Shown here piece by piece: positions 8,201-11,200 of a DNA stretch of 64,000 bases (its first letter is position 1; each line of letters begins with the position of its first letter). Made by a program: the position numbers and the translations under genes. The notes beneath the pieces are model-generated. The model did not search any database. It saw only the letters and a list, made by a program, of their open reading frames with translations, and was not told where the DNA came from. Origin of the DNA: Bugula neritina (Eukaryota > Animalia > Bryozoa); assembly GCA_964035545.1 (NCBI GenBank), contig OZ037765.1:26473504-26537503 (forward strand), read 5' to 3'.

Positions 8201-11200
8201 AGATGTTCAACACACACCTTCAAAGTGAGAGGACCTGCAGTCTGATATGTTACAAGAGCTCAGAAAACTTGACTTGACATAACATTGCGGAGTGCCATTG
8301 AAAGAATCTTCTCCAATCACATTGCGACAAACACTCACTACAAAACAATAAACTGTTCCTTGTATGCAAATAAATTAGTATATTTTAACCACTGCACCTG
8401 TGATTTCTAATAAATAGATAAATGCATGATGCTGAAGCTGTGAAAAACCATCAGCACAAACTAAAATATGTAATTGATGGAGCCATAGTAAGTTATTTCT
8501 TTTGATAGCGGATATACAGATAAGCGCATGTTATTCAATATAACAATGTATTATTTAATATAACATTGCGCTATTTGATACAAGATTGTGTTGTTTGAAA
8601 TATAGCATTGTGTTATTCAACATAACGTTGTGTTATTTAATACAACATTGCGCTATTAAATATGACATTGCGTTATTTAATATAGCATTGTGTTATTCAA
8701 CATAACGTTGTGTTATTTAATACAACATTGCGCTATTAAATATGACATTGCGTTATTTAATATAACATTGCGTTATTTAATATAACATTGTGTCATTTAA
8801 TATAACAATGAGTTATTCAATAAAACACATTACATACTCTATTCTACATTCAAACAAATTAATTATTCAAATTATTGTATACATCCAATTTACTCAAAAA
8901 GGCTTATGCGTGTTATATGTTATGATTAGTATAAAAAGCTACATATATCAAGTATATGTTTACATTATCAATAATGTGGTGCATGACAGAGTTAATATTT
9001 TTGTACCAATTATTAAGCTAAAAAATCTTTAGTAAACCTTGGAAAAATAAATTCAAGCAATATAAAAATAACTAATTGGTCAAAGTAGTCTTCAATCACA
9101 ACACAAAGATACGGGTTCAAATATAAAAAAATTTAGGAACATACTATTGGCTGATTTCAGACTCTCTCTTTCAATTTCAAGAATGATCCGGCATTTAGGA
9201 AGGCCACTGGCCTGTCTCGTGATGTACGAGGGTCGGGTAATGCCATCAATAGTCTCAGCTGCAACTTCAACATAACACCACGGCTTCGTATACCCTGACC
9301 CTTCATAGTTTCTAACCAAATGGCTGTTTTCCTGCACATGCCTGTGTATAAAAGAAATACAAACTACTTTCAAACATATTGAATGCAAATGCTGTTAAAA
9401 TGCAATTATGTTAATAAATTTTCAGTCTGCTATCATTATTAGAAATGATTGAAATATATTTTCTTTATCAATCATTACAATAAAAACTTAATATTTATAT
9501 AAAAATAAGATGAAGTACATAAATTATAAGTTTATAAATATTTGTAGTTCCAATTATGTACTTCTGTCGAAGTTTCAAACTAAAATTAAATAAACAACAA
9601 TATAGATTATTCATTTGGTTAAAACTTGCCAATGATTTGAATTATACCCCAAAAGTGCCACTATGATAGCATATTTTAGAAAAAATTGAAATATTAAACA
9701 TTTATGCTGTGTAATATTAAATATGCTGCACCTAACAAAGAGGTCTTGAATTAAATAGTGGTCCCAGGACATACAGGTGGAGTTGCTACAGCTGGTATTA
9801 ACTTCTCCATCATAAGAGTATCCCAGATCAGATGTAGAGTAACACTCTGCTGAATCTAACTCTTCCTCTACAAGTGCTACCAGCATTATATGCACATTAT
9901 ATAAGAGTATGGCAAGTATGAGAGGATAAAAGTGCGTAGAAATTATCCTCTCACACTTGCAGAAAGGAATCACCTCGCAGCCATTTTGTAAAAAAAAATC
10001 AAAAGTAAAACACCGTCAAAAGTTCATATTTTTAAGCAACAAATTATTTTTGCTAATGACAATTTGTAGCTGTTGCATTTTTTAGGGTTTCATAAAGGAG
10101 TATCATTTTAATTGTTTAAGAAAACTCAAGTTTTGTATTTGCCAATGTTCAAATTATTGATTTGGAGAATAAAAACAGAGGTTTTATTTCCCTATGACTG
10201 TAAAACAGTTCCAGTATCAAAGGAGGAAACTATGTTTGTCTTATTTTACAAATAAACATTTAATAACTGCAATATAACCAAGTAGCTGCAGTAGGATATA
10301 ACATATCTGTTATAATAACATTACTTGCTATTTGCAAGACATCCGAGGAATCTACTGGTGTTTTGGTCCAGGGTGAGCAAGTGCCATTCTGTGCAGCTGA
10401 ATGGTTACCTGAGTATGGAAACTGAGTTCCAATGTGGCATTCTGATGTGTCTAGAATAGATAAGACTGGGTGAGGAAATTCAAAACTGTAATGGTTTATT
10501 AATTGTTTAAATTATTATGGACCAAAAGCATTTCTACGTATAAAAAGTTACCAGCTCGCAAGTCTATCTAAAATACTAGCATTGATCGGTATAATATGCT
10601 CAACTTTACTCCTGACATTTGCTCCATTAAAATTTGTAAAAACCTGCATAAACTGTAAAATATGAGTCCACCCCTTTCAATTCTCCATGTTTTGCAGTTT
10701 TAGATATTCTACAGTTGTAAATACATATTCGACAGCTCTACACATTGTTCTACAGTTTTATATCTCTGTGGTAAAACATACACACATGTTGCACAAATAA
10801 AGAGAAGAAAACTCATGTGTTGCAAGTTGTGGTATTAGACTTACCAACTGGCAGGCATATGGGGGGTTTCCCTGACCAATAATTGTTATACATAATGCGC
10901 ACATTACATGTCCTGACAGCACTCCCAGCAAACATGTAGTGCCCGGACTGGCAGGTGTAGGAGACCTGATCGCCATACCTGTACACACCTGCTGTCAAGG
11001 AGTCGCGACTCAGCACGGCGTTCAAGGAGATGAGCTCACCATGGCATATTGGAGCTAAAACAGAACTCTGTTGTAGCTTTTAGGTTAAATTTAGGCCAGC
11101 AGAAAACAAACAAAGGTCAGCAAAAACGACAAATTTTAAACAACAGTAATGTGCTTATAACAATAGTTTAATGCTATCGCCTAGAAGTTATGTAAAGCTA

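Follow-up and report, generated by a model that had tools for sequence, protein, structure and literature searches.

A kringle-like exon pair lies inside an intron of a probable kringle in a mosaic-protein gene of Bugula neritina

We describe four exons on the minus strand of Bugula neritina DNA that resemble halves of kringle domains and that run, in transcript order, N1-N2-C2-C1; the two exons of an inner unit, N2 and C2, stand between the two halves of an outer unit, N1 and C1. The intron phases keep this series in frame, and both the layout and the frames are conserved in a relative. The explanation that we favor, with confidence that falls a little short of even, is that the four exons are included constitutively and would together encode a nested protein, N1-[N2-C2]-C1, as far as can be judged from DNA. 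Throughout, "the window" is the whole 64,000-nucleotide stretch that we analyzed, and positions are those of the window.

RESULTS

From ~25 kb to its start, the window carries on the minus strand a series of short, Cys-rich open frames. Sushi and EGF modules recognized by Pfam lie around the four exons (Table 1), and the locus is therefore part of a gene that encodes a secreted mosaic protein. This gene is long, is encoded on the minus strand, and has many Sushi repeats in addition to EGF. The exon downstream of C1 had no Pfam match at E 0.1 and is hence called Sushi-like by its pattern only.

Elsewhere in the mosaic gene, two adjacent Sushi-type exons are present twice with near-identical peptides (positions 2228-3284 and 4464-5214), as though a two-exon block of this gene had recently been duplicated in tandem. 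In the intron between C1 and the downstream Sushi-like exon, positions 7385-7778 have a summed contig depth 10 to 16 times that of their flanks in X1, the only public run found to hold the four-exon region and one not on record as RNA, and many loose ends; this stretch is probably a high-copy interspersed repeat. Two neighboring genes were also seen. One, at positions 40945-41403 on the minus strand, encodes HMG-CoA synthase (Pfam HMG_CoA_synt_N; E 2e-77). The other, at positions 45746-64000 on the plus strand, encodes a large lipid-transfer protein with Vitellogenin_N across two exons; an 810-amino-acid open exon in this gene (55241-57670) is without a Pfam match. The G+C content is ~30-33% in the half of the window that carries the four exons, and it climbs from ~32% to 41-44% across the lipid-transfer protein gene.

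Table 1. Features of the mosaic gene in transcript order. Half and unit assignments are predicted; a slash marks each exon border.
Feature	Position	Strand	Phase or class	Length (nt)	Splice sites	Remark
Sushi	11661-11957	-				Pfam E 1e-7
Upstream Sushi (CCP) exon	10845-11054	-	1-1	210	ttttag/CT ... TTG/gtaagt	Pfam Sushi E 4.7e-10 (frame 10816-11079)
N1	10325-10450	-	1-1	126	ttctag/AC ... CAA/gtaatg	putative N-half of outer unit (Cys1, G..Y.G, Cys2-x-x-W)
N1/N2 intron	9868-10324	-	1			88% identity to L013, 8 indel events
N2	9732-9867	-	1-2	136	ttgtag/AG ... TAG/gtgcag	putative N-half of inner unit; three Cys (one extra)
Intron within inner unit	9342-9731	-	2			
C2	9145-9341	-	2-1	197	acacag/GC ... 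ATA/gtatgt	putative C-half of inner unit (VRN...PWCY...KC); long tail
C2/C1 intron	8338-9144	-	1			holds minisatellite of 20-nt units, 8529-8827
C1	8218-8337	-	1-1	120	ttgtag/TG ... AAG/gtgtgt	putative C-half of outer unit (CRN...PQCY...C...DC, Cys3-Cys6)
Downstream Sushi-like exon	7103-7342	-	1-1	240	gttgtag/CG ... TTG/gtaaaa	four Cys in Sushi spacing
EGF	5412-5609	-				Pfam
Sushi	2228-2965	-				Pfam E 2.8e-8

An earlier sequence-only reading had given coordinates and phases for the four exons, and our own reading of the sequence bore them out; each exon is on the minus strand and lies between an AG and a GT site. It had also held that the frame is kept both when N1 is joined directly to C1 and when the inner pair is included (N1>N2...C2>C1), and this was confirmed; the junction codons are AAG, ATG, and ATG. 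The frame would also survive the skipping of either N1 or C1, and the joints N1>C2 and N2>C1 shift it. Phase-1 borders and a length of 3n, which define a class 1-1 module, were found for N1, for C1, for N2 and C2 taken together (333 nt), and for both flanking Sushi-type exons. No further half-kringle-like open frames were found in the three introns. Each of the four exons is single copy in the genome searched (216 Mb in 321 contigs), and there is thus no second copy (paralogue) with which to compare it.

We searched 1.84 billion representative proteins with C2 and obtained one true match, P0001, a 119-amino-acid ORF call that is 89% identical. The other three matches were repeat proteins, and among these representatives C2 was not found in any protein that had been annotated or derived from a transcript. 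Two metagenome contigs from JGI, L013 and L014, encode P0001. Contig L013 (2,565 nt) is collinear with positions 10998-8300 of the window at ~87% identity and holds, in a single piece, the end of the upstream Sushi exon, N1, N2, C2, and the first 38 nt of C1, which are identical in the two sequences and at which the contig ends. We attribute L013 to a sibling species, or a sibling type, within the same Bugula-type group of bryozoans.

All eight splice sites, all eight alignable cysteines, and all frames are kept in L013, with no stop codon. There is no indel event in 497 exon nucleotides, compared with 19 in 2,049 intron columns; ~4.6 would be expected in the exons from the intron rate (Poisson P, ~0.01). 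Since frames, splice sites, and cysteines have been kept at ~12% divergence, we infer that the four exons are used in one mRNA and that the default transcript includes all of them. Such a transcript, N1-N2-C2-C1, would yield the protein N1-[N2-C2]-C1. Identity to L013 is 91% in the exons versus 88-90% in the introns, which indicates that the gene evolves fast; that the exons are barely above the introns counts against the nested protein.

The minisatellite in the C2/C1 intron has ~15 copies of its 20-nt unit and a higher-order period of 80 nt, and its length differs between the window and L013 by 151 gap columns. The unit resembles a 16-nt stretch of C1 (positions 8274-8289, the PQCYVK codons) at 81-88% identity, a likeness that may be due to chance.

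The nested layout could instead serve alternative splicing, which we consider unlikely. In one form of this explanation, the inner pair would be a cassette whose skipping (N1>C1) leaves a plain outer kringle with six cysteines; in another, the outer and inner pairs would be chosen in a coordinated either/or fashion, N1 and C1 each being skippable in frame. The frame is kept in all combinations in which N2 and C2 stay paired, the pairing would be enforced because N1>C2 and N2>C1 are out of frame, and the pyrimidine tract of the N2 acceptor is poor, all of which would suit such a switch. However, the introns beside the exons are not better conserved than the rest in sliding identity to L013, unlike those of many regulated cassettes. 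The sole hairpin near the N2 acceptor, formed by an 18-nt inverted repeat (94% complementary; positions 9912-9960, 45 to 90 nt upstream of the acceptor), is broken in L013 by three changes without compensation and is therefore probably not a conserved RNA structure.

We next consider selection on the coding sequence. The pN/pS ratios against L013 are based on small counts and are 1.2 for N1, 1.7 for N2, 0.37 for C2, 0.70 for the four kringle exons summed, and 0.46 for the upstream Sushi exon, which has a single in-frame 3-nt indel relative to L013. Because their ratios are 1.2 and 1.7, N1 and N2 may be under relaxed constraint, which counts against the nested protein. The ratio for C2 is close to that of the Sushi neighbor, which favors the nested protein. 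A partly dead layout, in which one pair or single exons are skipped or drifting, at most one kringle-like unit works, and the nesting has no function, seems to us quite unlikely. In its favor are the ratios of at least 1 in N1 and N2, the slightness of the excess of exon over intron identity, and an inner unit that has lost Cys3 and Cys5 and gives poor matches to family profiles; yet the four exons show no indels, no stops, and no lost splice sites or cysteines at ~12% divergence, and it is C2, the least kringle-like exon, that shows the clearest purifying selection. Taken at the sequence level, the pattern suggests that frames and cysteines are constrained and that loops are free or under diversifying pressure. 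Constrained frames and cysteines with free loops are common in extracellular mosaic proteins.

To assign the exons to a domain family, we scanned them singly against Pfam, in which Kringle (PF00051) has a gathering cutoff of 34.3 bits. N2 matched profile positions 4 to 30 of 79 with 18.7 bits (E 0.0022), which is below the cutoff, and no match was obtained for N1, C2, or C1 at E 10. When solved structures were searched, N1 matched best the first 30 residues of the HGF, tPA, and plasminogen kringles (E 0.012 to 0.06), and N2 matched the first 30 residues of the HGF, uPA, plasminogen, and apo(a) kringles (best E 0.0007). When aligned to the kringles of HGF, tPA, and plasminogen, both N1 and N2 have the N-half motif Cys-x(n)-G-x-x-Y-x-G ... 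Cys-x-x-W.

The C-halves were compared in the same manner and with kringles of the same genome. C1 and C2 singly had no matches among solved structures, a profile of C1 plus C2 found no useful kringle there (the best match was prothrombin, E 5), and protein-atlas look-ups of C2 and C1 gave nothing usable. Using hhalign with a reference profile, A2, built from four kringle C-halves of the same genome, we aligned C1 over 29 columns with four cysteines in register (P 8.2e-5) and C2 over 12 columns, around PWCY only (P 6.8e-4). Of the C-half motif (N-Y-C-R-N-P-D ... P-W-C-Y/F ... C ... C), C1 has VCRN, PQCY, C, and DC, and C2 has VRN, PWCY, and KC. Half-kringle HMMs from four kringles of the same genome are weak (E 0.05 to 0.3) and usable as ranks only; by rank, the N-half HMM placed N1 first of 1,968 six-frame segments of the window, and the C-half HMM placed the segments that hold C1 and C2 among the top three. 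The PWCY/PQCY and RN motifs are absent elsewhere in the six frames of the window.

Kringles have six cysteines, which form 1-6, 2-4, and 3-5 bridges. N1 and C1 together supply six cysteines (2 plus 4) at aligned positions, with 72 residues from Cys1 to Cys6 if the two exons are joined directly, and we conclude that N1 and C1 very probably make up a kringle. N2 and C2 supply five cysteines over 88 residues, namely, Cys1, one extra, Cys2, Cys4, and Cys6; the position of Cys3 is occupied by Val, and Cys5 is absent. We class the inner pair, by its predicted sequence, as a degenerate kringle-like unit.

The sequence-only reading had taken all four exons for kringle halves. The structure matches of N1 and N2 and the four aligned cysteines of C1 support this, but no exon reaches the Pfam cutoff, and C2 aligns only around PWCY. 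Similarly, its claim of a second kringle inside the first holds for the gene, but the inner unit, with five cysteines, without Cys3 and Cys5, and with a C-half that can barely be recognized, is not a whole canonical kringle. The claimed site of the insertion, the variable loop between Cys2 and Cys3, also needs refining. Rather than amid a free loop, it lies three residues before the outer Cys3 and directly after a hydrophobic position that aligns with a conserved core Leu, i.e., beside a core position.

It is very unlikely that the exons are not kringles at all and are instead Cys-rich linker segments that resemble kringle halves by chance, with nothing nested. Although the failure of every single exon to pass the Pfam cutoff, the absence of a kringle among the solved-structure matches of the C1-plus-C2 profile, and the empty protein-atlas look-ups would all be consistent with chance resemblance, there are two independent N-half matches with kringles at the top and in the right register, C1 is aligned across all four of its cysteines, and the PWCY/PQCY and RN motifs are unique in the six frames of the window. 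Moreover, the halves sum to a six-Cys unit of kringle length.

Finally, we examined the order of the exons, which the earlier reading had given as N1-N2-C2-C1 and not N-C-N-C and had proposed to check in orthologues and raw reads. L013 is collinear, the X1 contigs cover the exons, and one of them, of 1,106 nt, joins C2 and N2 in the same order; no conflicting joints were seen among X1 contigs in positions 8200-10500. The check thus returned the same order and no local misassembly. Two metagenome scans with the C1 and C2 frames gave no matches. Local scrambling of the order by assembly is practically excluded, since the independently assembled L013 carries Sushi-N1-N2-C2-C1 in one piece, the X1 contigs are concordant, and each exon is single copy; the one point found in its favor is that the minisatellite in the C2/C1 intron could in principle confuse an assembler.

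DISCUSSION

The evidence from layout, phases, and conservation leads us to favor the nested protein, N1-[N2-C2]-C1, made by constitutive inclusion of the four exons. In kringles, the Cys1-Cys6 bridge brings the two ends of the domain next to each other. Because this bridge ties the ends together, the inner unit could extend out of the outer one as an excursion, by linkers of ~8 and ~16 residues. The two units may both fold, and we put forward only tentatively the full proposition that a kringle-like domain is constitutively inserted in a second kringle with both folded. The odd number of cysteines (five) in the inner unit counts against the nested protein. Nor is it assured that the outer unit would fold around the insert, because the insertion is next to a core position, three residues before Cys3.

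Nesting of two domains of the same type is known to allow folding in myosin X, in which one PH domain is split by another (PH1N-PH2-PH1C; PMC3216653). Myosin X differs in that it is an intracellular lipid-binding protein with a crystal structure, whereas the bryozoan units would be extracellular and disulfide rich and are known from the gene alone. It differs also in that the bryozoan nesting coincides exactly with exon borders and phases.

Compared with the Kringle family (PF00051; plasminogen, HGF, tPA, and ROR), the predicted N-halves share Cys1, G-x-x-Y-x-G, and Cys2-x-x-W, and the C-halves share (C/V)RN and P(W/Q)CY. In the outer pair, six cysteines stand in kringle order over approximately the length of a kringle, and, as in the family, the whole is a class 1-1 module between other class 1-1 modules. 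Unlike known kringles, the outer unit has its halves split in the gene by another two-exon unit and carries Gln where PWC has Trp; the inner unit is without Cys3 and Cys5, has an extra Cys, and has a long stretch from PWCY to its last Cys.

For a module to enter an intron, it must be symmetrical and match that intron in phase (Patthy 2021, PMC8001218). The nested layout most likely originated in this way, through exon shuffling that placed a class 1-1 module in an intron of phase 1. Intronic recombination would have inserted the symmetrical 1-1 module N2+C2 into a phase-1 intron that, as it happened, interrupted another domain of its own kind, N1/C1. The phase-1 borders, the symmetrical insert of 333 nt (3n), and the Sushi and EGF neighbors are all as in class 1-1 exon shuffling (PMC8001218), whose usual target, in contrast, is an intron between domains and not, as here, one within a domain of the same type. 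The exon-shuffling origin proposed in the earlier reading therefore holds, given a 333-nt 1-1 unit, a phase-1 gap, and class 1-1 neighbors.

In other kringles of the genome, among them G000:C1:12084157-12085322 (L002) and G000:C3:22006821-22007185 (L003), the internal introns are in phase 0 and precede Cys3 by 4 and 12 residues; an internal intron is absent from one kringle. With internal introns at two positions and one kringle lacking them, kringle intron positions are evidently not fixed in this lineage. Because kringle introns elsewhere are in phase 0, a preexisting phase-1 intron three residues before Cys3 is assumed, which counts against the nested protein. We found no insertion traces (flanking direct repeats or transposon ends) around N2-C2.

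Exon-shuffling theory holds that a symmetrical module may land in any phase-matched intron, even inside another domain. To our knowledge, natural cases in which exon borders, phases, and domain halves are all aligned are rare, and none is known for kringles; a literature search for a nested kringle arrangement found none. Were the pairs chosen in an either/or fashion, the locus would exemplify alternative splicing in an unusual, nested form. A nested protein, if made, would reveal how far small disulfide-knotted modules tolerate insertion and would offer a natural template for the engineering of domain insertions. If both units fold, it would be the first disulfide-rich extracellular module nested in another of its own type, and exon shuffling into a domain's own intron would have been caught in the act and kept across sibling species.
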